64,000 bases of DNA from Lytechinus pictus (GCF_037042905.1 NC_087245.1:2480001-2544000), one strand, 5' to 3'; shown: positions 40,709-58,962, counted from the first letter of the stretch. Program-made: numbers and translations. Notes: generated from the letters alone by a model not told the origin.

Positions 40709-42390
40709 TGAGGAAGCCTTATCAAGTATCTTCCTTTTCTGTCACAAGTATTAAAAAGTATTAAAAAGTTATCTCGTATGGCGTATTCTGAAGATTGCAT
40801 AACTATTTTGAAACACTATCCCTTTAAATCTTTGTACAAAGGGTAAATCCTAGAGCCACAAGTTTCTGGGAAAGGCTTTGCTTGTTGGATGTCATGTGCT
40901 CATGTTTTCAAGGGAAAGGGCCATCAGACATTGCCCGCAGTTATTGTTTCTTGTTACCCCTAGCAACCACAGCTCTGCCATGGAGAAGGAGAGGAAACTG
41001 ACTGCTCTTATAAGTTATAGATTTTAGTATAGAAGAGAATGTATGTGACCAACCAGAACCATGAATCATGTTAGAGATGAATACTATCCCTAACCTTCTT
41101 TCCATGAAGGTTTGTTAAATTTTATGCAAAGCACAATGCGTAGGTTGCTCGATTTGACCACTTTAGGAACTCACTTGGTCTTGGTTGCAAACTGTGTCCA
41201 TGTTCTTTTGTAAACCACATCCACTCAGTAATAATTTCCTGTTTAGCATGGTAAATCGTGGGCTATTGTATCCTGAATGAGTATATTTTGGAAATATTGA
41301 AAACAGTTAAAGAAAGAAGATACATAACATTGCTGCATCAAACTTGGGTATAACAGAAAAATACATGTATCGGCTTCAGACTTCAATATTTCTTCTGATT
41401 TGATAACCCATAATTTTGTTTTTGAAAATTTGTTACAAAGTTACCAATATTCTGACTTCTTATGCACAGCTGAAAAAGTCACACTCTACATGTAGGTTCA
41501 GTATGTTGCCACTTACATTTAAACTTAATGATGAATAAACCAAACTCACTGGTCTATTTCTTTGAACTCTTTGTGCGCTAGGCCATGAACCCCTCTGTGC
41601 TGAATTACTTTCAGGGAGGGATCAGGAGAGGTAAATGAAATGGACTTGCTCAATTCAACTAGCTATAACTTATCACTGCAACATTTTGAAGGGAGATGTT
41701 TCATAGCAAAGTTGTAGAGAATTTCACCCGCTTTCTGACTATACAATATATTTTGGAAAATAATGATTAAAAATTTGGTAAATAATGCCTAATATCACAC
41801 ATATATGTTACTATTATGGTAAACATAAATACAATGGATTGTTTGTCTGAGAGTGAAATGCAAAGTTTTTCATGGCACCGAGTGTGCATTGGTGCGAAGT
41901 ATGCGTGGAAACTGGAAAGAGTTAGATTTTTTTTTTTATAGGGCATTATGTTTCATATTAATGACTCATTCATGGGGAAGGGGTAATGGGCAATCTTTAA
42001 TGTAAGCCTGTACATGTAGGCCCCCTATATTGAAAAAAAACTACACCATTCTGTTATGTTTTGGGTTTTTTTTTTGTTTTTTTATTTTGGGATATTTTGT
42101 GTTACAGTAAATAGGGGAAAGTAGTTATGTCACAAAAAGTGATATTTTCAATACAATATTATTGATACTTGCAGTATTATCTGTTTTGAATGAAGACTTC
42201 TTAAAAGTGATCCATTGGAATACACTATAGATAGAGTTGCAAGTGACATATTAACAAGTAGGTCTGCTCTCTGCAAACAATCATTTCTCCTCCCTACGGT
42301 ATGTGGACTCCATTTTAAGGTCTGTGCAATTTCTCTGCAGATTAAAAATAGCAATATGTTTTGGAACTTTCCTCTTTTCTCCTGATACAG

Positions 42391-42496
42391 ATTACCCACC
42401 GATTCCAGGGGAAATCAGGATAAAATGGCGGAGACAATACAGGACTCTTCTGCTGTCTGAAAACAAACTTGTCTTGGGCCAGAGGATATATCTCAG
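42391..42496 (+). other. Candidate upstream (5'UTR) exon containing a short uORF
   Basis: Acceptor tttcctcttttctcctgatacag| at 42390, donor CAG|gtaaat at 42496/42497; contains aaaATGGcg (42425) with TGA at 42458-42460. No transcript evidence. Confidence 0.4.
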
Positions 42497-43228
42497 GTAA
42501 ATATGTACATCAAGTCAGCATAAGATAGGTCATGTGAAAGTAGGTTTCCAATAGGTCAGATCTTAATACATGTACCATTGTACGATCGGTTAAACCTAGG
42601 AAATGTAAGAATCATTGTAGAAAAGGTGATTGCTGCACACTTTCTGTACAAAATCCCACATGGCCAATGTTTGCAAGGATGATATCATCACTCTTCAATG
42701 AGATACCAATTTTGTGTTTTAATGTGTTCATTCTTTATGTCATGCAAAATGCATTTGCTTTCTGACTACAATGGATTAAATGATTTGGTATAAAGCTCCC
42801 ACAAATAGTTTCCCACCTTATATGACGCATGGTACAAGCATACTTTTGTCAAGTAAACCATAAAATGGGCTCCTTTAGAGTAAGAATTGATCCTCTCTTG
42901 ACAATTGTCCTCAGTGACATACTTACATGCACTTGATAAACTATAAAGCTATTTATGCATATAGAAATAGTATATCATCTCAAGATCAGGAACAATACAA
43001 GGCATCCCAGAAAAAGTGGAACGGTGTTTTTCAATCACTTTGCCAGAGAATACCAAAATCATCAATTTTTGGTGAAGTCATTCCCTTTTAATTTATGCAT
43101 ATTTTTTTTAATTCATACATGTTCAATTTTCACAAGTAAAAGCTATGAAATTTGAGGAAAAAATTGTCTTAAATTGCCTTTCATATAGATGTAAGTTATT
43201 TGAGGAACACCTGTTTATATGCCTCAAT

Positions 43229-43715: not shown

Positions 43716-45953
43716 AATGTGAAGCAAATAAAAGGCCTCCCTCCCCACCCGAGAAAAAACACTGTCCAGTTCATGATTATAAAAAGACACTTTGGACAAA
43801 ATTTTGTCTAAAAAATATGGATTTTTTTTCTTTAAAAAAAACATGGGAAATGCGAAATAGATTGGATTCAACGATCTGGGTATGATTTTTTGTACAAGAT
43901 GCCATAATCAATATTACGGGGGGGGGGGGGTAATAATCTTCCCTTTTTAAAGGCAAAGTACAAAATATAACTCAACCATCTCACTTTTCTGGGTCATACG
44001 GTTATGGTAAATATGGGACATATGGTTATCTACATGTATATATATTTTGGTTTTCGACATACTTAAAAAAAAAAGACATAAATCTTGAAATATTAAACAT
44101 TATGATATACCTATCTTAGTTTAATTAATAGAAAGGAAAGTGATCTGAAATATTTCTGATTCTTCAAAAGCCATTTCTTTACCTTCATAGGTATATTTCC
44201 TCCTGTTTATCCAAAGTTTCAATACTTAATACCATTTATGTTGGGAGGAATTTTTTAGGACAATACTTAACTTCAGAAGGGAAGTGCTGTAATGTACATG
44301 TAGCTAGGGCGATTCTCTTTTAATTTGTCTTTTTTCTGACCTCAAAGAGTGTAATTTAATGAAGAAATACAAGTGGCACACAATTCTGGGAAAAAGGGGT
44401 TATTATATTAAAGGATAACGTTTAAAAAGTGCTGATCATTTTGGCAGCATATTTGTATATTACACTAGGTAGTTAACACCAAAAGCTAAATGTGGGCATG
44501 TGAATCTAGCAATTGCTCTAGCTTCATTGTCTTTCGGGAGGGGGGGGGGGGGGGCAGATAAGTATGCCCATATGAAATTGGCAGTCCAGACACTCTGACA
44601 TACGTGGCATGCACATGTATTCTTTTCTCATGAACGATTGTTGGAAAAAAATAAATAACAACATACTAAGGCTTGACAGCGAAATTACTGTATGTCGCCT
44701 GACCACCATTCAACAGTAGTTTAATTAAACTGATGATGCATCAAAATGTAATTTATCCATTGAACAAGATCTTTTCCATTGCTACTCATCAGTTTTACAT
44801 AGATCAGTAATTAATTAAGTGCAGTCATGTGTGAAATTACCCAGCTAAATTGGGATCCATCCTGTATGCTTGCCTGCAAATATTAATTTTTGATACTATA
44901 CAACAAAACGGTGCCTGCTCTTGCATTTTATTTCAATTATATTTGTCTTTATTATGAGTAGTTGCATGTTACCATCATTAAAATTATTTTCACACCCCTA
45001 CTGTCCCAATAGGAGTGGCCCAAAGAACAATACCCCTGTCATCCACGAACCCTGCTCAATAGGACCATACCACTCAACCTTTGTGAAGACCAAACAGCAT
45101 CTTTCTGGAGGGAAGAGACAAGCCACAACAAAGGTCTTTGTGTGTTGCCATTTGCATTTCTATGTTTTTCCAATTGATGTTGATGGACAATATTCCATGT
45201 ATATTCCAATAAATTATATGTGAGTGATCAATTAAAACAGCGCAACTTTGTGAAAATCTTGTCAAGAAAATTATAAACAAAATTAATCAGTTATGCCAAA
45301 AGTCCTTCATGTAGTGTTGGCTCTTGAAGCTACCTTTTCCATTAATGTGTTTTGCATGGCTTTTATTTTTTGGGTGACCATTTCAGCTGTGTTTGTTACA
45401 GGTTCTACTCCGGTTTATTCTTATTTTTCCAGGCAACATAGCCTCACATTATTATCAGAGATGAAAGGAGAATTATGATTGGCTAATCTGATCTAGTCAA
45501 TTTGTGATGTGATCAGAAGCTGAAAGGCTCTCTTTATTTATTTACCCTTGGGTTTTTTGAAAGCCTTCCAGGCCCTTAAGCTCGGAAACCAAAATAATTC
45601 AGGCTTCCAAGAAATTTGGATGATTTCCTTTCAGTCCAAGATTAGCTCAATTATGGAAATGTACTCTAAAAATTGCTTTGATCAGCTAGCTTGGGTTTTT
45701 TGCATAGGAAGGGAACAACAAATGTTGACAAGACTTTTTTTATTTTAGGATTCATGATTTATGTTGTTATTGAAGCTTCCAAATATTAAAGATTGATGGG
45801 TAAGACTTCAAAAATCTGTCCTGATTTTGTAATTTTTTCATGTTATTTCAAATTGGTTTTGTTCTAGTACTAGTTATGTTCAATATACCAAACTTATATT
45901 GGCTAGCTTGAGCTGTTGTATCATTCTATCACAGGGTAATTTGACTCCAACTC

Positions 45954-46486: not shown

Positions 46487-48959
46487 CAACTCAAGTAGTA
46501 AGAAATAAAAAGAAACTTTAGGAACTCCACCATTTCATATGACCAATGAGTGAAAAACATCTTAAAATGAGTTTTATTGATTCCAGTATTATGATATCTC
46601 AGATTGACAAAGAAGATTCATAAGATCTTGGAAAAATGGAATTCAATAAATACTCTATATAAAGTGTCCTTAGAGCGGTACTCCAAGCCAAAATACTATT
46701 ATCAAAGAAGAAAAAACACTGAAAATTTCATAAGAAGTTATGGAATGTAAAATTTTCACATTATTTTGATGAAAGAGTTCTATGCAGCGAGCTGATGGCA
46801 TGATGTCTACACTTTCCTTTTCCTTTAATATTACATATGCAACAACATTTTTTCCTCAAAATACACCATAAATCACTTGTTATCCTATTTTGTTGTCTGA
46901 GAAAGGAAATTTCCTCTCTGTGCAAAAGATTTTCAGTAGATGGCTGAGCTCCACATTATGATTGCAAACAATTTGTTTTGCAAGTGTGCATGTAATGAGA
47001 TAATTTTGTGTGGGATTGTAACAGGCCATAGAGGAGTAGGATTAGAATAAATTAAAGATAAAAAAAAGCTTGAGTGTAGCATTGTAAATCAGATATGGCA
47101 GTCATGTAAACCAAGCCCATTTCTTGTTGTTTAGCCGGTGTAGTCTTGTACGCCCACATTTAATGCATCCCCTTTATTTCTGAGAATTCTAAGTATTCTT
47201 GGCCGTTGGATAGAGCTGTCTGCTCAGATTTCAATCAAATTTCTATTCCACAGACATCAGAGGTCCCTGGAAACTATACTCTCAACAAAAGTGAAGTCTA
47301 AAAATCACACCTTCAACCCTGCTTAATCTTTAATGTCATATACTGTATAGTCTATTTTTAAATATTTAATATGTTCATATTCAGAAGTATTATATATATC
47401 ATATATTTCCAATGATTATAGGTTACTTCTAAATTCATTAATTGTACTTTTCATAACATTTAAACAGAAAACTGTTTCCCATTTCTTTTTTTAATCTGCA
47501 TAAAGAATAGCCTAGCACTTTATTCTAAGAAAAAAAAGATTTATATAGCAGTAAGCATTACAAGTCTAATGCAGTCAAACAACTATTTAACTTTCTTGAT
47601 ATTTTAGTGTGGTTAGTTGACCGGAATATACACGTAGATAACAATGTATGTACACATTTTTTCTCTGAATTTCCCATTTTGATTTACCAGTAGTATTTAC
47701 TAAGTTACAAAGCCTTAAATGCAGAAGAACACAAATGAATCGTTTTATATTCTTCAGATGACCCTTTATTTTTCAATAATTTTCACTTAAATGTACTGAA
47801 TTGATTTAATTCTATGTAAGTTCTATATACTTTTAATTTCCTGTCTTGATTTATTGATTATCATCACTTTCATTACCCTTTGATAAAATATGAACTAGAA
47901 ATGGTTTTCTTGGACTTGTCATCAAATTCAAAACCAATTAGAATCATGTTTGAACAAAGAAGCAATTGGTATTTCAGTTTTGTGTTTACATTGATTTCTT
48001 TGGAGTAGCCACGGTAGCCATTTGAATATTCTGAAAGTTTGAAGTACTTTGTCATGTATTTCCTGGTTTTTTGCATTTCTTGGAAGAGATACTTTTTATG
48101 GTATTCATTTCAGAGTTAGAAGGCGTGGAGATTATTATTGATGTTATTCTTCTTTCTTGTCCGATAACTACACAGATGATCTGATATTAGGTTGTGATCC
48201 AGCACATAGCAGTCTTCTCATTTGAAGTCATCAAATCATCCTGGCTGCTATGAACTTCAATGTTTGAGCAATGATAACAGGAGATTCTTCATGTTTAAGA
48301 CAATTCACAGTAACAGTTAATGTTTTCAGCCATCAGTATATCCCAACTTTTGCATATTTGCATATTAGTCTTGTTAAGAAGTCGGTTAAGGCACTTACAT
48401 GCCGTCCAGTCTTGCTGGTGTCCTGTGGATAAGTGCTCCCTTGTAAGGAGGAAACTTTTCAAGATTGTGAAGCAGGTTTTAGAAATGGTAGATGTTTTAA
48501 TTCAATAGCTGATCATTGTTTGGTCTTTGATTTGGAAGAATATTTAAAATTTGTGTGATGATAACGTTGCTAGTTTGTTCCTGATGTTTTCTCCAAGCTT
48601 TAGTCTTTGCTGTATTTCATATTTTCATTTCAATAGTCATATGTTTAGTACAGTGCTCATGTATTGTTTAGACTCTCTCAGTATGAGCAAATGTGTTGTG
48701 AAATGTCCTCGACACACCCTCATTCTCAAACGTAAATGATAGATACAGGAAAAATGCACATTGCTTCATTGTTAAATGGACTTGCAGTGTTCAAGGTGAA
48801 ATGTCAAGTTTGAAGGACCAGTGATATTCCTTTGATATTTTGTATGAGATCAGTGGTATTTTTTTCTTGAAAAATAGTAATAATATCTTTAAGTTATATA
48901 CTGTTTTGCTAAAGGATGCAAAGCAAAACTATTATTACCCTAGATTTAGCTGGAGCTAC

Positions 48960-49131: not shown

Positions 49132-49248
49132 TCAATAGGCATGAATAATACAAATGTTACTTTGTTAGAAAACTTGCTTTAACTGTATATGCTTATATCA
49201 TTTCAGATTCCAACCAGGTCTTCAGCTAGGAGCTGTGATTTAAGTGCA

Positions 49249-49311
49249 ATGATGGTTAAGCCAGTCAAGAAACGATTCATCCAGGAATGGAAAATGACAG
49301 AAGCAGTTCAG
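49249..49311 (+). CDS. First identified coding exon of an uncharacterised ~1273-aa zinc-finger/co-repressor-motif protein (MMVKPVKKRFIQEWKMTEAVQ); exon spans 49207-49311
   Basis: Acceptor tttcag|ATT at 49206/49207, ATGATG at 49249, donor CAG|gtatat at 49311/49312. 63 nt, phase 0, joins in frame to 52106. The 42 nt between acceptor and ATG are also open in frame, so the start is uncertain. Confidence 0.7.
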
Positions 49312-51671
49312 GTATATATTTATGTATAAAAAACAAATCATTGTTTTGTGGCAATTTCAACAATATTTGGTTTGATATATCTTAAAGTTTTATTGGTAGA
49401 TGAAGTTTGTATGACCTGCAAGAAATGAGGAGGGCAATGTTTAGATTTATTTTTATAGATTTGATGGCAAAAATGATCTCCGTGAAATCACCAAGTTCTA
49501 CATAATATGTTTAACAGAATTAAATATTTCACATAATGAAACAAAAAGAAATTTGAGTTTTTGACATCATCGGTTACATGTGCGTGCTTATCACTTGTGA
49601 TAAGCATAAGTGAAAATTTAGAATGTCATAGCTTTCTTATTTTACTACAGATTTTGCTGATGTTTGATTTTTCTCCCATGTATTAAAATGAGCACAGAGA
49701 ATTATGGGTATGTCATTTAGCACAAGATCCTTAAACAGCCGTGTATGAAATTGTGAGTTTACAAGCGACGCTTAAACAAACCACCCTGATCAAATTGTCA
49801 TCAGTTATCAGTTTCGACAAAGTCCTGTTTTGATAGATAAATAGAAACACTGGTCTCTGACTGTTTCTATGAAAACTGTACGACAACTTGTATCTGTTTA
49901 CAAGATTCATGGAATAGTGACGAGCATTTACTTTTGATTTCTATTTGATGCAGCCTTTATAGATACAGTCATGAGCAGGAGAAAACAAAACTGGAAGTAG
50001 AGGCTGTAGAAAATACCCCCAAGAGAAAAACAAACAAACAAAAAGAATAAACATGAATAGAAACAATAAATTGTCTTTATATAGCGGGAGCAAACAGAAA
50101 CTGTAGTGGTTTACTGTGGCTTTTTGTCTCACCATTAGTTGCTGATTATGCTTGCCTACTTCCTTTTTGGGATGGGTTTATTTTATGATATTTTGATTTT
50201 CATAGGAAAAATAGGAATAATTAGACAAAGTCACAACTAATTGAAATTGACCTGGTTAAAAGATTCCATATATTATTGTACACTTGGCAGCTCTTTTAGG
50301 TTTGATACTTTGTTAATTTTTTTTTTATTGATGACAAGACACATTGAAAATAAAAAGAAGCCTTTGCTTTTAATTCAAATGAGGCCTGGCTAATTTGGCT
50401 TTGTAGATGATATGGTCAGAAGGGGAAAGTGCTGGGGCGGCTACAACACCCTCCCACTCAATCTTTTTTAAAACCTTTTCCAAGTTTAGGAAAGAAGCAT
50501 AAAAGAAAGATTTGGGTGAATATCAGTGATTCTGTTAGTTATTCTTGGATTATTTATTTTCGTGATATAAAAATGTGTCTTGACTCTTTTTTTGCCTGTG
50601 ATCTTATCCTTCATATAAATATTCTGATTGTCAAGATACATGAAGAAGGAAATAATCTAATTTTCTTGGGAGTTTACAACCGAATCAAATTATTTCCAAG
50701 GAAATATGAACAATACAGGGACATTTTATAGATTTAAAATTTGATTTTTCAGCAAGTTTTTGACAATTTTTTTTTCAATTGAGTTTCCCCCAACAATAAA
50801 CCGAAACTGCCTGTTTTCCAAAACCAATGATCAACTTGATGTTTAGGTAGACTCTTGGTCTTAATGGTAAGATTTTGTAGAAATTCTTGCTACATGAAGG
50901 GAAATTAAAGAAAGCGTAACAATACATGAAGCTCGAAATATATATCACCTACCAGAAGAAAAAAACAAAAACAGGACCATATAGTATACCAGTTGTCTGG
51001 CGGTTTTGAAGATTGATTGATTTCATTCAATTGACCTACAAACAGCATGAAAAAGGTGTACCAAACTATTATTCTGGAGAATATTAGATGTATCAAAGTA
51101 AAAAAAATGGTACAATTTTCCTCTACCAGCATAAATTCAACCTGTGAGCATTTGAAATGATAAATTGTTGATTGTTAAAGGCTTCATTGGGTTTATGCAT
51201 ACCCTGCATTTAAAACAATATATATCATGACTTCATGTTTCTTTTCTTTTTGGTTATTCTCTATCTCTCTTGTAATTTATAATCTCTACCTGTTCAATCT
51301 TTTAATTTCAAGGTATTTTCATTTCATTATATTATCTCATAAAAAAAATCTATTATATAAATTTAAAAAGGAATATTATTTACATAAAGTATCTAAGTAG
51401 CTAAAGTATATAGCTCTGAAATGCTTACAGATTGTTATCATTTATCATTGCTTGTACACGTCGATTCCATTGATTGTGATATCTATCAATGAGTATGCAC
51501 AAGACTAAGAAAATATTTTTTTAAAGGAATATAAAAAAGAAGCCAGACTAGGAAGCATGATAATGGTAAAGCATGAAGTTGATTTACTGTGACAAACCTT
51601 ATTGAAAATGATAGAATCCATAGTGTGAGCTGAATCTATGATATGGGGATGATAAACATGTCCACAATAAT

Positions 51672-51826
51672 GGGCCCGTTGCATAAAGTTACTGTTATAG
51701 TAACTTTGCCATTAATGGTAACTATCATGGTAATTCTGATCAACAGCCAATCAGAATCAAGGATTCTAGCAAGTTACCACTGCATGGCAAAGTTATCATA
51801 GTAGTAAAGTTTATACAAGAGGGCCC
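51672..51826. mobile_element. Short palindromic MITE with central CCAAT box (intron 1)
   Basis: gggccc...gggccc ends, arms taactttgcca / tggcaaagtta, loop cagccaatcag; relatives at 61461 and 62535. Confidence 0.75.
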
Positions 51827-52105
51827 AGGTCAGTGCCATGCATTCAATAGGGTTCCTATCTTCAATCTACTTGTGGTCCTTTCAGAGACTAGCATAGGAG
51901 GACGAGACTCAAAACTCATTGTTTAGTAATATAAACACTGTATCCTTTTCTCATGAGTGTTCTCTATAAGTTTGATGATGATGGCCTAGATCTTATAAAA
52001 AGCAGACTGGTTTTAACTAAAATTGTGGTCATTGATATCAGTGTTAAAGTGCCAGCAGCATTCATGCAATTTCACTAGCAATTTCTATTTTTTATTCCTT
52101 CACAG

Positions 52106-52714
52106 CACAAAGAGAAGATACCAGAGCCTTCTCCTAAAGCTGTAATGAATCACGTTGAGAAGTATCCCCATACAACCACAGCAAATCTCTTGACTCAGCA
52201 ATCAGTCATGCACCCAACCCACCCATTTCGCATTACAGCCCCCGGTGTTGCATGGGGTACACCTCCTGGTGACCCCCATGTGGCCATGCGTAATCACTAC
52301 GTTGAGCCCATGTACCTACATCATCAGTCCATCCCTAGATCAACGGGACCACCCAACGTCATCATCCGTCCACCAGAGAGGCAGAATCACCCTACGATGA
52401 TCAACCCAACGGACATCACAGGCTTACCCGGTCGTGGTGCCAAGCGTCCACAGATGCCCCAGGACATGGCTGCAGTGGATGCCAAGGCAAGCAGGAAGCG
52501 ACGCAAACCAGAGGGCAAGACTGAACTTGTTATGAGTCCATTCCTGAATGGTGGCGTCAACGGCAGCGTGCATATCAATGAGAAGATTCCTCCAATCCAA
52601 CCAATTATCTTAGACTTTGAGGTGCCCCTGCCGCCTATATCACCCACCAACTTAAATCCTGATGAAAAATTGGGAGGATCCAGGGGAGACAGTAGTGAAA
52701 AAAAGAGCGCTCAG
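52106..52714 (+). CDS. Coding exon 2 (203 aa; Pro/His-rich, NLS-like SRKRRKP)
   Basis: Pyrimidine tract and cacag|CAC acceptor at 52105/52106, in frame with ORF 52145..52738; donor CAG|gttagt at 52714/52715; 609 nt, phase 0/0; GC higher than flanks. Confidence 0.9.
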
Positions 52715-52983
52715 GTTAGTTTATTATTATGTACTTAATGTCATTGAATGTACTCGCAAAGTAATGCTTCTTCGTCTTCCTTCTATTTGTTAAATATATA
52801 TATCTTCCAGTTTTCATTAAATTATTTATCAGTGATTATTCAGTATTAAAATACCATGAATTTAGGCAATCAGATTTCAAGATTATAACTTTTGGTAAGC
52901 AGATGTCTCTGGTTTTTTTTTTTTTTTTCGCAAGTTGCTACACTAATCATTGATTATACCTACCATTTGATTTTCATATGCAG

Positions 52984-54852
52984 GCCATGTCTCCTGTCCA
53001 CTCTCCTGCCAGAGAGGATGAACCAAGACATCATAATAGACATCCAAAACTTGCTGGTTTAGCTGATCGACAACCATCCAAGCCAGGAAGTGACAACCTA
53101 ACAAAGAACTCTCTCTTCAAAAAACCAGACATTGATCATTACAAGTCCAGTGTACAGACAGGTGGAACCCGTTGCTTCATCTGCCAAAACGCGATCATTC
53201 CCAATCCAAAGGACTATCCTGTTGCACCTAGTGGTCTTGTTATATGTACAAAGTGCCGAAAACTCGCAAAGTCTGGAAGTCCTGTAGCGATTGGCCCACC
53301 ACCCAAACTTCAAATACCCAGCAGAAATAACCAAGCACGGTCTCAACCTCAGCAGAGGATACCTCGTTCACCTGTCGCTAAATCCCCTGCTGCCAGCCTT
53401 ACTCTCCCTCGATCACCACTTCCCCGATCACCTTCATCTAGGTCTCCAGCTCCTACTTCCCCTAACCCAAACTCTTCGCCTAGTTCTCCTGCAAACACTT
53501 TATCCGCACCTAATTCTCCAGCTTCTACCTCTGGACTGTCTGTGCCAGGTTCACCACGATATTCTGCTCCAAACTCACCAAGGTATTCAGCACCGAATTC
53601 TCCAAGGAATTCAGCACCAAGTTCACCGATATCACGACCACCAGGTTCTCCTCTGCCAAAGCATCCTTCTATAGTAGTTTCACGATCTCCTTTTTTTAGT
53701 TCCAGCTCTCATTCACAGCCACCGTCTCCACATCCTATTGAATCTTCTAGTGGTAGAAGACACAGTATCAGTGGTACACATTTAGAGGTGCATGTTGGCA
53801 CCAGTGCTTCAAAGGCATCTCCCACCGGCAGTATCGGTGCAGTAGCAAGCCCACGGTCGGGATCTACTGCAGATTCCCCCGCCTCAATGGAAAACTTGCA
53901 TTTACCACCTGGTCGAGAAGGTGATGATACAACAATCCGTGCTCTACTGCAGCTTGGTCGTATGAAAGCAGACAGTGAATGGAGATCAGGGCTACATGGA
54001 AACAGAACTCCTGATCAGGGAGATCTTGGGTTACCACGGAATCTTGCAGATATCTCCAAGTTAGACCAAGCTCAGTTGTTAGAATTACAGCACAGACTCA
54101 GATATGCTGGGTTGCCTAGCCGTTATTTTCAGCAAGATTCACATAGATCTGCCAATCCTGATGGTATGGAGACAAAAGTTTCAACTGGCCATCAGTTATC
54201 AAAGTCATCATTGAGTCCCAATAGTGCCAAGAGTGTGATCCAGTTAGGCTATCAAAGAAATGGACCACCCTTAATGAGATCAGAAGGTGTCGTTGGCACT
54301 GCTCTTCCTATTACCGCACTACCATCAACAGAAGATGCACCTTTGAAGATCAGTCGGGTTGCTCGCAGTGCTCAAGGTAGTATGGATCACAGGAATTCTC
54401 TTTCACCTAGCGACCCTCAGAGTAGAATTGAAATGTTGCGTAGGACCGGGCGACAATGTGCTGCATCCCATTTTGAAAAATATGGAAAATACTACAAGAA
54501 AAATGGAAACAATGCAAATGCCATCATAGACCTGTTCCGAGACCGTTATTCTGTGTTCCAGTGCCACTGCTCCAGTAGTGAAGTGTTCTTCATCAGGTGT
54601 CCTGAATGTGATTTCATCTGTAATAGTATATTTGGGATGGAGCTTCATATAGCTGCCCAGAGACATGGTGAAGGTAGTGGACATCCCCCTCCACAACCTC
54701 CATCCAATGATTCAGACTATGTGTGTGATGACCAATCTTGTAAGGATAGCAGAGCCGATAGTGAAGCTTCTCATTCTTCATTTGAAACCCAATCAGCAGA
54801 CACAGAAGCTGAGGGATCAGTCAGCGGCTCACCCCCAAGAACTACCCAAGAG
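52984..54852 (+). CDS. Coding exon 3 (623 aa; C4 finger, SP-rich repeats, C2H2 finger)
   Basis: Acceptor atgcag|GCC at 52983/52984 within ORF 52978..54885; donor GAG|gtaaca at 54852/54853; 1869 nt, phase 0/0. CFIC-x20-CTKC at 53173-53256; CPEC-x12-H-x5-H at 54598-54666. Confidence 0.93.
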
Positions 54853-55253
54853 GTAACAACCTATTCTCTTGTTCCCTTTTTATAATGACTTTTATTTACC
54901 ATAGCATGAACATATAAAATTGTTTGACCAGTCTGGTTATTATGATAATTTCTATAACATTCCTAGCTCACTATTTTAGCCAGTCAAATCAAATGATTTC
55001 AGTTGCTTGAAATTTGTTAATAACAAGTTTTAATGAAATGGGCCTCAGATAGTTCACATTTTCATATAAAAGCATTTCAAAGAGGTAACCCCTTTTAGTA
55101 ATGATTCATTATAAGCAGAGGCATTAATTTCAATGTATCAATTGTTTGAGCAAATCTAATATTTTACTCTTTCATGTCGAGACTTGTTGAGACAGGATGA
55201 GACAAAGCTATGTCTCTACTGATACTCGGACAAAACTTTGATTTCAATTTTTT

Positions 55254-56281
55254 GTCTCACTTGCATAGCAGAGTGAGACTATAGGCGCCGCTTTTCCGAC
55301 GGCGGCGGCGTCATCAACACCAAATCTTAACCGAAGGTTAAGTTTTTGAAATGACAGCATAACTTAGAAAGTATATGGACCTAGTTCATGAAACTTGGCC
55401 ATAAAGTTAATCAAGTATTACTGAACATCCTGCCTGAGTTTCAGGTCACATGACCAAGGTCAAAGGTCATTTAGGGTCAATGAACTTCGACCATGTGGGG
55501 GGGGGGGGGAATCAACATCAAAATCTTAACCTGAGGTTAAGTTTTTGAAATGTCATCATAACTTAAAAAAATATATGGACCTAGTTCATGAAACTTAAAC
55601 ATAAGGTTAATCAAGTTTTACTGAACATCCTGCTTGAGTTTCACGTCACCTGACCATGGTCAAAGGTCATTTAGGGTCAATGAACTTTGGCCAAATTGGG
55701 GGTATCTGTTGAATTACCATCATAACTTCGAAAGTTTATGGATCTGATTCATGAAACTTGGACATAAGAGTAATCAAGTATCTTTGAACATCCTGTGCAA
55801 GTTTCAGGTCACATGACCATGGTCAAAGGTCAATGAACTTTGGCCATGTTGGGTGTATTTGTTGAATTACCATCATATCCCTGTAAGTGTATTGGTCTAG
55901 TTCATAAAACTTGGACATATTAAGAGTCATCAAGTATCACTGAACATCTCATGCGAGTTTTAGGTCACATGATGAAAGTCAAAGGACATTTAAGGTCATT
56001 GAACTTTGGCCATTTTAGAGGTAATTTTTATTAGATTGCTGTCATAACTTTCAAAGTTTATAGATATAGTGTATAAAATGTGGATATAGGGGTAATCAAG
56101 TATCACTGACAAGTTTTAAGTCACATGATCAAGGTCAAATATCAATGAACGTAGTACTATTGTATCATTATATGAATGGTGTTTTTTGTGAATAATTATT
56201 TTATAGTAGTTTTCAAAGTCAGCACTGCTGCTATATTGAATCGCGTGATGCAGGTGAGACTGCCAGAGGCATTCCACTTGT
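55254..56281 (+). mobile_element. Second copy of the same HINE-like family (5 tandem units) in intron 3
   Basis: Nearly identical termini (gtctcacttgcatagcagagtgagac ... atgcaggtgagactgccagaggcattccacttg) and the same repeat unit as 13360-15118; inserted in a T-run. Confidence 0.9.
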
Positions 56282-56886
56282 TTATTTTCTTTTGTTGAAT
56301 AACATTGGGGAATTTGACTGGTTCTCAGCTTTTGTTGCCAGGTGCCCCCCAAAAAGAGAGAAAAAAAATTGTTCCACTACAAGTAGTACAACATTGTTTT
56401 ATTGTCTTCTTGTATCCCTTTGACCATACAGAAAAAATGTTGCTGAGATTTGTGTGATCAAGCCATTTTGCGGTTTCATAAAACACTTCACAAAGTTCTT
56501 TATTTATAACTGTGTGATCTACTTGAATATGTTAGGCTAACATATTATTTTTGGTTGCAGTAATTTTAGTTTCACCCTAATTTGGCAACTTGAATTGCAG
56601 TCACTTTTTGATTCAATGTATGGAAGATAATGGCATAGAGTATTCTTTCTTGCAACCTTATCTTTAGGTCTGTTGAAAAGTAATTTTATGAATAATCTTA
56701 TGACACACCCTGATGTTATTGAATTGAATTCATTTATTTTCCATTTAAAAAAATGGGCAAAATCAAGAATATACAAACATAAAGTATAAAAATGAGACAT
56801 TATACAAATGACGTATCATACTATAAAATAAATGTAAAATACTTTGTTTTACATATACATATTAGGAAAATTGGATGCCCATGGAA

Positions 56887-57238
56887 GCAGTATACTTGTA
56901 GGGTTGCAGTATGCTTGTGTTCAACTTGCATTCCTTTTGTAAAACCTAGAATGTATAGAATTTATTTATTGAAACAAAAAGAGGAGGCACATTTAGGCTT
57001 CCAAGGGTTATAATATTTTTTTTTCTTAATTTACGTGTATGGACATATATATTTCATGTAGGGTTGCAGTATGCTTGTAGGGTTGCAGTATGCTTGTGTT
57101 CAACTTGCATTCCTTTTGTAAAACCTAGAATGTATAGAATTTATTTATTGAAACAAAAAGAGGAGGCACATTTAGGCTTCCAAGGGTTACAATATTTTTT
57201 TTTCTTAATTTACGTGTATGGACATATATATTTCATGA
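56887..57238. repeat. Recent 179-bp tandem duplication in intron 3
   Basis: cttgtgttcaac at 56914 and 57093; copies nearly identical. Confidence 0.95.
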
Positions 57239-57681
57239 ACAAGTAAGTATACATGACACATACTGTATTTTGCATTATACAGGCATTTATTCATATCTCA
57301 GCTGAAATGAATTTGTTTAATATGATGAAAGCAAAATTATAAATTATTGAATATTTATGCTGGTATTAGGGCTGCACGGTCTTTTACATTTGGGTTTTGG
57401 ATTATTGAAAAATTGCAACAATATGGTGATGTATAACCAATGTTCAAATTTTAAAGCAGAGTAAAGTTGGTGAGGCCTGACACTTTTGTGATTCCTTTGA
57501 CCTTGATGGAAAGAATGTTTTGAATATTCTGTTTTGTCTAAAACATTAAAATCTCAATTTTAGTACAATATCATGAGAGATTATGTATTCTGCACTCGAT
57601 TAATATTATTTGGTTATTAAAGTTTCAATGTCATGATATCTTTTCCTCTTCTTTTTCTTCCTTCAATCGTTGTCTCTGCAG

Positions 57682-58962
57682 ACCTCTCAAAATGTTTACA
57701 GTCCTTTACCTGGCAGTATTCCTGAAGCTTGGCAAGTAGCCAGTCGTGCAAGATCTGGAAGTGGAGTGGTGGACCTTGGTTCTACTGTTCCTCATGTCAA
57801 TATCCCCCGTCCTTTACCTCAGGGATTAGGGGAGCATCTGCTTCCACATCATAGGCCTGCAGAGCTTCCCAGCCCCCTAGATCTGAGTGGAAAGCGGTCA
57901 GCTGAGCAGTCACTCTTTGAGCATCGAGAAAGAAGCGGAAGTAGAGTGAGAAGAAGTCATGAAGGCAATGGTCCATTGGATCTGTCTGGCTACAAACACA
58001 TCCAGACTCCTCACAGCCAATTTGTGTCCAGCCAGAGATTGGGATCAGTTGGAAATGTGATTGAAAAGTCCATTTCTACAAGCATTCCCAGTCTTACTTT
58101 ATCTGATTCAGTTTCCCAGATACCACCAGGCATGCAAGCAGTGGGTCCCCCAGGTATTCCATTTGCCTGCAGTGCAAGCACTTCTCAACCACCTTATCCG
58201 ATTCCAACCATGCTCTATCCTTTATCAACTCTAGCAGGTACAATACCTCTCTTAACCCCTATCCAGTTCCAGTCAGCATCTGCACCACCAAGTCCAAACT
58301 ACCCAAGGCAACTAGAAATAGGCCAGCAAAGGCGTTCCTCCTTCTCCTTAGCTCCACCTTCTGAAAGATCATCAAAGAGTGCAAGCCCTGCTCCATCGAT
58401 GTCTTCACCTCAAGAACAGACACGTCAGTCACTGTCCATACCGCAGCAATCGTCACCCAAACCCTCCTCCCAAGGTGCTAAAGGAAAAGGATTGAGTTAT
58501 CAAGGTGGCACAATCACTATCCAACCATCCAGTCTATCCTCATCCATTAATCAGAAAACTGTGACATTAGATTCCCAGTTCTCCCATTCTTCCCCGGCCA
58601 CACCCCAAGGCTCCCATTCCCCTCAGACCCCAATGCCAAGCTCACCCGCACCTCTTCTCTCAAGTACTGTTCAAGCTCAACCTGTCTTGGTCAAAAGTGA
58701 ACCACAAAGTGATGAAGAAACAGACAGAGACAGAGTAATTCCAAGGTTTGGAAGGGATAAAGACACTTCAATCAACAAGGATGATGGGACAGAGAGTAAG
58801 AGTGATATGCCAGCAAGTTTAGAGGGTAAAGATACAGATGCAGATAAGGACAAAGAAAAGGAACAAGAGGTAGAGAAATCTAGTGTTAGTCCAGAAATCC
58901 CAACCTCTTCACACTACAACACCATCCCACCTGTTCAGATAAAAATTGAATCAGAAAATTAG
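57682..58962 (+). CDS. Terminal coding exon (426 aa + TAG; two PLDLS motifs, VKSE and IKIE SUMO sites)
   Basis: Long pyrimidine tract and ctgcag|ACC acceptor at 57681/57682, in frame with ORF 57670..58962; phase 0; stop TAG 58960-58962. Confidence 0.92.
   Translation, partial: TSQNVYSPLPGSIPEAWQVASRARSGSGVVDLGSTVPHVNIPRPLPQGLGEHLLPHHRPAELPSPLDLSGKRSAEQSLFEHRERSGSRVRRSHEGNGPLDLSGYKHIQTPHSQFVSSQRLGSVGNVIEKSISTSIPSLTLSDSVSQIPPGMQAVGPPGIPFACSASTSQPPYPIPTMLYPLSTLAGTIPLLTPIQFQSASAPPSPNYPRQLEIGQQRRSSFSLAPPSERSSKSASPAPSMSSPQEQTRQSLSIPQQSSPKPSSQGAKGKGLSYQGGTITIQPSSLSSSINQKTVTLDSQFSHSSPATPQGSHSPQTPMPSSPAPLLSSTVQAQPVLVKSEPQSDEETDRDRVIPRFGRDKDTSINKDDGTESKSDMPASLEGKDTDADKDKEKEQEVEKSSVSPEIPTSSHYNTIPPVQIKIESEN

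Follow-up and report, generated by a model that had tools for sequence, protein, structure and literature searches.

The gene regulatory networks of sea-urchin development are among the best mapped, and the co-repressor wiring within them is poorly described. Points of reference come from proteins in which short motifs that engage co-repressors have been defined. The PxDLS motif is an established ligand of CtBP, and in RAI2 both ALDLS motifs can be occupied by CtBP at once (PMC11187106). MeCP2 and SETD5 provide experimentally defined ligands of TBLR1, PIKKRKT and PLKKWKS, respectively (PMC13385800), and the TET1 SID binds Sin3A PAH1 through a hydrophobic face made up of A893, I894, A896, L897, and L900 (PMC6168491). 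Here, we analyze a gene at positions 49,249–58,962 of a 64,000-nucleotide stretch of the Lytechinus pictus genome (GCF_037042905.1 NC_087245.1:2480001-2544000; hereafter, the window), whose 1273-residue product carries canonical or candidate counterparts of these motifs. An earlier note on this DNA, made from the sequence alone, had described the product as an unrecognized, multi-co-repressor adaptor-like protein. We place it in what appears, from sequence comparison, to be a new echinoderm-restricted family of a known functional kind, outside every named family tested. Our best reading, to which we assign a probability of roughly 60%, is that it serves as a CtBP-docking, SUMO-regulated nuclear co-repressor scaffold.

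Results

Paired PLDLS motifs and SUMO consensus sites

Exactly two copies of the canonical CtBP-binding motif PLDLS, 27–38 residues apart from start to start, are found in all ten orthologs assembled from four echinoderm classes (echinoids, a holothurian, asteroids, and crinoids; the marine-metagenome open reading frame (ORF) P0010 is counted apart). Both copies lie within the Ser/Pro-rich, disordered part of exon 4 (Table 1). None of 20,000 shuffled versions of the protein sequence, the chance test used throughout, contained two copies. The SUMO consensus psi-K-x-E occurs in the urchin protein only at VKSE (residue 1184) and IKIE (residue 1267). Orthologs contain two or three such sites each. 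One lies beyond the YQGGTI island, and nine of the ten orthologs have another within the last ten residues; it is this conservation of position, rather than their number, that lends the sites support. As predictions at motif level, docking of CtBP and control by SUMO have good support, and they are firmer than the other readings discussed below because canonical consensus motifs are found only there.

In the scaffold reading, a basic cluster would carry the protein into the nucleus, and the two PLDLS motifs, about 30 residues apart, would dock CtBP dimers or tetramers. The lysines of the two positionally conserved psi-K-x-E sites, one at the extreme C-terminus, would act as SUMO acceptors, and a hydrophobic-acidic island, PIILDFEV, may serve as a SUMO reader. 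A CX2C-X20-CX2C finger and a helix-hairpin-C2H2 module would be the only folded parts and would probably target the protein to another protein or to nucleic acid. The assembled protein would thereby recruit gene-silencing complexes and repress transcription, and echinoids would produce only a form that begins MMVKPVKKR and lacks the winged helix described below.

Conservation of the PLDLS pair could mean either that CtBP is delivered or that it is sequestered. The two ALDLS motifs of RAI2, 21 residues apart, bind CtBP together, polymerize it, and inactivate it (PMC11187106). By analogy, the urchin pair might bridge CtBP tetramers into inactive filaments or foci and so relieve repression, and the retention of both motif number and spacing in every ortholog is consistent with such a role. 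However, ZEB, EVI1, LCoR, and Snail carry several CtBP motifs and are nevertheless ordinary repressors, and the other conserved islands, together with an ancestral winged helix, point to chromatin targeting instead. Sequence homology to RAI2 is also lacking: Pfam SOBP/RAI2 gave no match at E<=1 in the urchin protein or four orthologs. We regard an antagonist of this kind as doubtful.

Two further motifs bear on whether the scaffold would have partners beyond CtBP. Near the N-terminus, PVKKR.IQ.W is retained in nine of the ten orthologs, with PMKKR in the holothurian; its core matches the P-[ILV]-K-K-R pattern of the TBLR1 ligands, and P[ILV]KKR was rare in shuffled sequences (P=0.004). The second, TI[RK]ALL[QK]L, is found in all ten orthologs and in the partial metagenome ORF P0010, and the pattern [AT]I.AL..L was likewise rare by chance (P=0.0015). 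Aligned in register with TET1 A893-L900 (AIEALTQL), the urchin TIRALLQL is identical at four of five face positions (I894, A896, L897, and L900), all family-invariant, with Thr replacing A893. An invariant face combined with two varying solvent-side positions is the pattern expected of a SID-type helix. The rules for both motifs given in the earlier note, P-[ILV]-KKR for TBL1/TBLR1 and AIEALTQL for SIN3 PAH1, agree with the published ligands (MeCP2 NID core PIKKRKT and SETD5 PLKKWKS, PMC13385800; TET1, PMC6168491).

These motifs suggest a three-way hub that would engage TBL1/TBLR1 (and through it NCoR/SMRT) via PVKKR, SIN3 PAH1 via TIRALLQL, and CtBP via the two PLDLS motifs. Against this, PVKKR fits a simian virus 40 (SV40)-type nuclear localization signal equally well. 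The core is followed by F/A-I here versus K-T/S in MeCP2 and SETD5, so that the K and T/S after the Arg are unmatched, and the conserved IQxW has no counterpart in either protein. TIRALLQL could be another LxxLL-like helix, a class with many partners. TBL1 and SIN3 docking are thus candidate activities that fit published motifs, and we consider the full three-way hub unlikely, if tenable.

Islands of conservation and folded modules

Serine and proline together make up about 28% of the protein, which is predicted to be mostly disordered, and its mean identity to seven orthologs is 0.44. Against this background, a 9-residue sliding window picks out KPVKKRFIQ, QPIILDFEVPLP, LFKKPDIDHY with the CX2C-X20-CX2C finger, REGDDTTIRALLQLGR, the C2H2 finger PECDFICNSIFGMELHIAAQR, SSFETQSADTE, PLDLSGK, GPLDLSGY, and YQGGTITI. 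The gene is under purifying selection: compared with L. variegatus, dS is 0.088 and dN 0.0136 (dN/dS, the ratio of nonsynonymous to synonymous substitution rates, 0.154). Within the islands there are 12 synonymous and 0 nonsynonymous changes, and the disordered remainder, at a dN/dS of 0.186, is also constrained. The motifs to which the earlier note had drawn attention prove to be islands of conservation across echinoderm classes, and every position that it gave is exact (PVKKRF at residues 5–10, SRKRRKP at 52490–52510, DTTIRALLQLG inside 53902–53961, PLDLS at 57874 and 57973, VKSEP at 58690, and IKIE at 58939). Its description of the chain as largely low-complexity holds for the Ser/Pro-rich disorder; two zinc fingers and several more islands had gone unlisted.

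The basic SRKRRKP cluster is likely a nuclear localization signal, and one of the additional islands, PIILDFEV, which resembles a SUMO-interacting motif (SIM), may read SUMO. For the region around the C2H2 finger, AlphaFold2, run with a ten-sequence alignment, predicts a helix, a beta-hairpin bearing C751 and C753, and a beta-beta-alpha finger with C763, C766, H779, and H785 as ligands (CPEC-X12-H-I-X4-H). Positions 54457–54666 (residues 716–785) encode six conserved cysteines (716, 751, 753, 763, 766, and 770) and two histidines (779 and 785), although the model is of low confidence around C716 and the holothurian lacks this residue. With more conserved ligands present than a single C2H2 site requires, there may be a second zinc site.

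A predicted RFX-like winged helix outside the echinoids

The sea-star, sea-cucumber, and Antedon proteins contain about 110 additional N-terminal residues, of which residues about 30–110 form a predicted domain (P0003, P0009, P0011, P0012, P0013, and P0002). RFX DNA-binding domains and clusters rank first when this domain is compared by language-model features, and its AlphaFold2 model has winged-helix topology. The top PDB match of the model is the RFX5 DNA-binding domain (8zjr_M; probability 0.98, 25% identity), and RFX-type entries lead among AlphaFold DB clusters. Since sequence methods are blind to the relationship and the wing hairpin is shortened, we assign the domain to the RFX-type winged helices at the level of predicted fold only.

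We did not find the winged helix in the urchin protein or in 49 kb upstream using tblastn and a hidden Markov model in six frames, so the domain has either been lost in echinoids or is not joined to the present gene by splicing. All echinoid models, like a second one from a crinoid (P0015), begin immediately ahead of KPVKKR, at a site with a conserved Met; this suggests an internal start or an alternative promoter. The presence of the domain in orthologs from other classes means that the ancestral protein was probably a DNA-targeted repressor and not a pure adaptor. The earlier interpretation therefore survives in part. The unassigned status of the protein, the conservation of its motifs, and the literature on which the note drew hold; a pure adaptor is probably not what the ancestral protein was, the winged helix in other classes having been missed.

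Distribution of relatives

An exhaustive phmmer search of 1.84 billion representative sequences, with exon 3 as the only query, returned four relatives: the protein itself, one protein each from the crinoid Antedon and the sea star Patiria, and a marine-metagenome ORF. The lone match outside the family was an unrelated protist protein with zf-met-like repeats (P0005). Three word-seeded searches added members from Acanthaster, Asterias, Holothuria, Strongylocentrotus, Diadema, and Anneissia. No homologs outside echinoderms were detected by the exhaustive exon 3 search or by the three word-seeded searches, one of which covered the crinoid PIILDFEV/FKKPD region; the word-seeded method missed some known family members, and its blanks carry little weight. 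Pfam searches of the exons, the full protein, and four orthologs returned nothing at threshold and only zf-C2H2 below it, and a PDB sequence search with exon 3 gave no meaningful match. The protein is, as had been claimed, unrecognized: it has no Pfam domain at threshold and no homolog detected beyond echinoderms. Public names of family members ("FLO11-like," "proline-rich protein 36-like," and "piccolo-like") mirror composition only, and a literature search found no paper for the LOC identifiers of the gene or for CtBP/PLDLS in sea urchin.

The same earlier note had excluded BCOR, PRDM, MTA, ZEB, and TRPS1, and we concur. None of the corresponding Pfam domains was found at E<=1 when we looked for their hallmarks, namely ankyrin/PUFD, PR-SET, BAH-ELM2-SANT, finger clusters with a homeodomain, and the GATA finger; TRPS1-type clusters appear as weak feature neighbors only. 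In ESM Atlas feature searches, exon 3 and a full-length sea-star ortholog scored 0.83–0.88, which we treat as leads only, as we do the nearest named clusters, all of them sparse-finger repressors (ZNF750-like, castor, tiptop, ZFHX3-type, TRPS1, and ZNF219; 0.83–0.85).

These results bear on the idea that the protein is an ortholog, strongly diverged, within a bilaterian family already known, such as the RFX5/RFX7 branch or the sparse-finger repressors of teashirt/ZFHX type; its function would in that case be known in outline, with sequence similarity alone having faded. The non-echinoid proteins resemble RFX7 in layout, with the RFX-type winged helix at the N-terminus and about 1400 disordered residues after it. 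The CX2C-X12-H-X5-H finger gives weak zf-C2H2_ZFHX3 matches (E 0.03–0.16, with scores below every curated threshold), and the nearest feature neighbors include tiptop and ZFHX3-type clusters. However, RFX DNA-binding domains are normally very conserved, whereas here the wing is shortened and PF02257 goes undetected; there is a single finger versus the three of Teashirt; and no island is common to any non-echinoderm protein in the exhaustive (exon 3) or seeded searches. We consider such an origin improbable.

Two side observations concern individual relatives. The ORF P0004 comes from a public run, and P0010, in the same cluster, from metagenome contigs of Tara Oceans. On these marine contigs (Tara Oceans, L003 and L004; Logan run, L005), the homology to the large exon 3 is contained in a single genomic ORF. 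The DNA probably derives from a planktonic echinoderm larva or gamete. In L. variegatus, two annotated loci (LOC121429427 and LOC121429656; P0006/P0008) are located on the same 96.7-Mb chromosome (CM031015.1), and their 1273-residue products differ at only 4 positions; the pair represents a recent duplication or an uncollapsed haplotype.

Gene structure and transcription

The locus is a real, transcribed, and annotated L. pictus gene. Splicing of 49249–49311, 52106–52714, 52984–54852, and 57682–58962 on the + strand yields 1273 codons and a stop. The lengths of all four coding exons are multiples of 3, introns are in phase 0 with GT..AG borders, and the product matches XP_054750056.2 (P0007; "uncharacterized protein LOC129255749 [Lytechinus pictus]") with 0 mismatches. 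For RNA evidence, 49150–55149 was compared with data from the same species, comprising two sets of RNA-derived contigs and two stranded RNA-seq runs. The joints 49311>52106 and 52714>52984 occur in transcript contigs of 8042 and 4955 nucleotides and in raw stranded reads. RNA sequence continuing past 54852 reads ACCTCTCAAAATGTTTACAGTCCTTTACCT, which corresponds to the opening 30 bases of exon 4 (from 57682); RNA thus documents each of the three coding junctions. Exon 3 is wholly covered by RNA contigs with 0 mismatches, and read depth in the compared interval is confined to the strand expected of a + strand transcript. The four phase-0 coding exons and the 1273-residue length proposed earlier are therefore borne out by frame, splice borders, RefSeq identity, and RNA joints, while the total exon count falls short by at least one non-coding 5' exon, which ends at 45133 and is spliced to 49207.

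This additional exon is evident from two RNA contigs, X1 and X2. Beyond 49207 they extend upstream into sequence with a unique match at 45102–45133, where GT follows; at least one more exon therefore precedes the four that encode the protein. Contig X1 contains 579 nucleotides upstream of 49205 in all, leaving about 450–500 nucleotides of 5' untranslated region (5'UTR) beyond the mapped part. A frame of about 70 codons at 44921–45133 is open in L. pictus and in phase with the coding sequence, which raised the option of an N-terminal extension. In L. variegatus, the same frame has a TAA and a TGA about 60–75 nucleotides upstream of the donor; these stops are exonic only if the exon, whose 5' end is unmapped, extends that far. 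S. purpuratus has indels in the upstream-exon region, nucleotide conservation with that species begins only at 49235, 14 nucleotides before the ATG, and all three echinoid RefSeq models begin MMVKPVKKR. On these grounds we judge a coding extension unlikely and read the upstream exon as 5'UTR.

At the other end, contig X1 runs 4878 nucleotides past exon 3, from which the 3'UTR would be about 3.6 kb if unspliced and would extend downstream of 58962; a scan for AATAAA yielded no placement of the mRNA 3' end. Rfam returned no match over 44–63 kb.

Two further features of the region are non-coding. Blocks at 40813–41112, 42368–42513, 45381–45695, and 46969–47320, situated ahead of the gene and inside its 5' part, align with Strongylocentrotus purpuratus at 78–83% and are, by this conservation, candidate cis-regulatory modules. 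Intron 1 contains, at 51676–51830, an element resembling a miniature inverted-repeat transposable element (MITE), with terminal inverted repeats GGGCCCGTTGCATAAAGTT ... AACTTTATACAAGAGGGCCC. RNA depth over it is very high on both strands, and many loose ends occur along with strand-switch joints; a multi-copy repeat transcribed elsewhere would be expected to look like this.

Table 1. Coordinates of exons, motifs, and modules in the window
Feature	Position	Strand	Remarks
5'UTR exon, 3' end	45102..45133	+	Unique mapping of X1/X2 upstream sequence; donor GT; start unmapped
Exon 1	49207..49311	+	42 nt 5'UTR, start codon 49249, residues 1-21; acceptor AG 49205-49206; joint to 52106 in RNA
KPVKKRFIQEW, basic motif	49258..49290	+	NID-like TBL1 candidate or nuclear localization signal
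Exon 2	52106..52714	+	Residues 22-224; both joints in RNA
SRKRRKP basic cluster	52490..52510	+	Basic cluster at aligned position in all classes
QPIILDFEVPLP, PIILDFEV island	52598..52633	+	0.92 identity, among most conserved islands; hydrophobic-acidic, SIM-like
Exon 3	52984..54852	+	Residues 225-847; donor use shown by RNA running into exon 4
FKKPDIDHY, then CX2C-X20-CX2C zinc finger	53116..53256	+	All four Cys and FKKPD invariant
LPPGREGDDTTIRALLQLGR, amphipathic motif, SIN3 PAH1 SID-like	53902..53961	+	T541, I542, A544, L545, L546, L548 invariant; 543, 547 vary
Helix, beta-hairpin, C2H2 finger (CX2C-X12-H-X5-H)	54514..54672	+	AlphaFold2 pLDDT (predicted local distance difference test) 80-90, residues 735-787; extra conserved C751, C753, C770
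HSSFETQSADTE, acidic Ser/Thr island	54772..54807	+	[ED]TQSAD in 10/10 orthologs; DTQSVD in metagenome ORF P0010
Exon 4	57682..58962	+	Residues 848-1273 and stop; start confirmed by RNA continuing after 54852
PLDLS 1, canonical CtBP-binding motif	57874..57888	+	Residue 912
PLDLS 2	57973..57987	+	Residue 945; 33 residues past PLDLS 1
YQGGTITI island	58498..58521	+	Conserved; no assigned role
VKSEP, SUMO consensus then acidic residues	58690..58704	+	Residue 1184; VKSE, VKME, IKIE, or VKIE at matching place in all classes
IKIE, SUMO consensus	58939..58950	+	Residue 1267; seven residues from C-terminus

Discussion

Several observations weigh against the proposed co-repressor scaffold. Short motifs in disordered chains can stay conserved for other reasons, and the number of psi-K-x-E sites is no higher than chance (shuffles, P=0.1). 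For the N-terminal domain of the non-echinoid orthologs, neither Pfam RFX_DNA_binding (PF02257) nor a profile search of PDB sequences gave a match. Foldseek comparison of the finger module with Swiss-Prot AlphaFold models, PDB, and Atlas returned generic C2H2/zf-met entries or noise and nothing family-specific. Moreover, the H-x5-H spacing of the finger is typical of zf-met/U1/JAZ fingers, which commonly bind double-stranded RNA.

This last point opens the way to an RNA-linked or otherwise non-transcriptional protein, in which RNA or a structural partner would be the ligand of the zf-met-type finger, and any resemblance to co-repressor motifs would be fortuitous. That the sole non-family match of the exhaustive search is a zf-met-like repeat protein is in keeping with this idea. 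However, matches of the module to double-stranded RNA-binding domains, at Foldseek probabilities of 0.1–0.16 and a template modeling (TM) score of about 0.2, were rejected, and strict retention of two canonical PLDLS motifs throughout echinoderm history is hard to explain without CtBP. We hold an RNA-linked role to be highly improbable.

Our preferred reading remains the CtBP-docking, SUMO-regulated scaffold. A more far-reaching scenario, which we think is rather a long shot, is that three motifs allow it to dock CtBP, NCoR/SMRT (via TBL1), and SIN3 simultaneously under a SUMO switch, the protein having begun as an RFX-like DNA-binding repressor that lost this domain in urchins and became a free adaptor or a RAI2-like CtBP sponge.

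If the scaffold reading is right, the gene would represent a lineage-specific node that recruits generic silencing machinery. The predicted docking sites for CtBP and for SUMO, two of each, and the candidate sites for TBL1 and SIN3 have stood unchanged since crinoids diverged from other echinoderms. The family also offers a natural experiment, since the protein has an RFX-like domain in sea stars, sea cucumbers, and feather stars but lacks it in sea urchins. The tandem PLDLS pair makes it a second candidate, after RAI2, for paired-motif polymerization of CtBP. Motif mutants are feasible because L. pictus now serves as a genetic model.

Comparison with known systems

RAI2 is the closest parallel for the paired motifs: it is likewise a disordered chain with two identical CtBP pentapeptides, joined by a linker of 21 residues there and 28 here. 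The pentapeptide is ALDLS in RAI2 but PLDLS in the urchin protein, which adds two zinc fingers and many islands and has no sequence homology to RAI2. With the NID of MeCP2 and SETD5 the protein shares the core P-[ILV]-K-K-[RW] (PVKKR here, PIKKR in MeCP2, and PLKKW in SETD5). The flanks differ, A/F-I-Q-x-W here versus K-T/S, as does the setting, since the motif is extremely N-terminal in echinoids and MBD and SET domains are absent. Likeness to TET1 is confined to the SID-like helix, outside of which the protein has no TET similarity.

Like Teashirt/Tiptop and ZFHX3-type proteins, to which it is near by language-model features, the urchin protein is long, disordered, and predicted to be nuclear, with PLDLS motifs and a CX2C-X12-H-X5-H finger. 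Teashirt/Tiptop proteins have three widely spaced CX2C-X12-H-M-X4-H fingers. With one such finger versus at least three in these families, and no homeodomain, the urchin protein is not a member of either. The non-echinoid orthologs come closest to RFX5 in the predicted fold of their N-terminal domain and to RFX7 in their long disordered tail, whereas the urchin protein lacks the domain altogether; RFX proteins are not known to have zinc fingers. Drosophila Hairless, finally, shows no homology to the family, which has neither its Su(H)-binding region nor a Groucho eh1/WRPW motif and has zinc fingers and an ancestral winged helix of its own. What the two would share is a logic, that of a disordered adaptor presenting separate short motifs to each co-repressor, CtBP among them.

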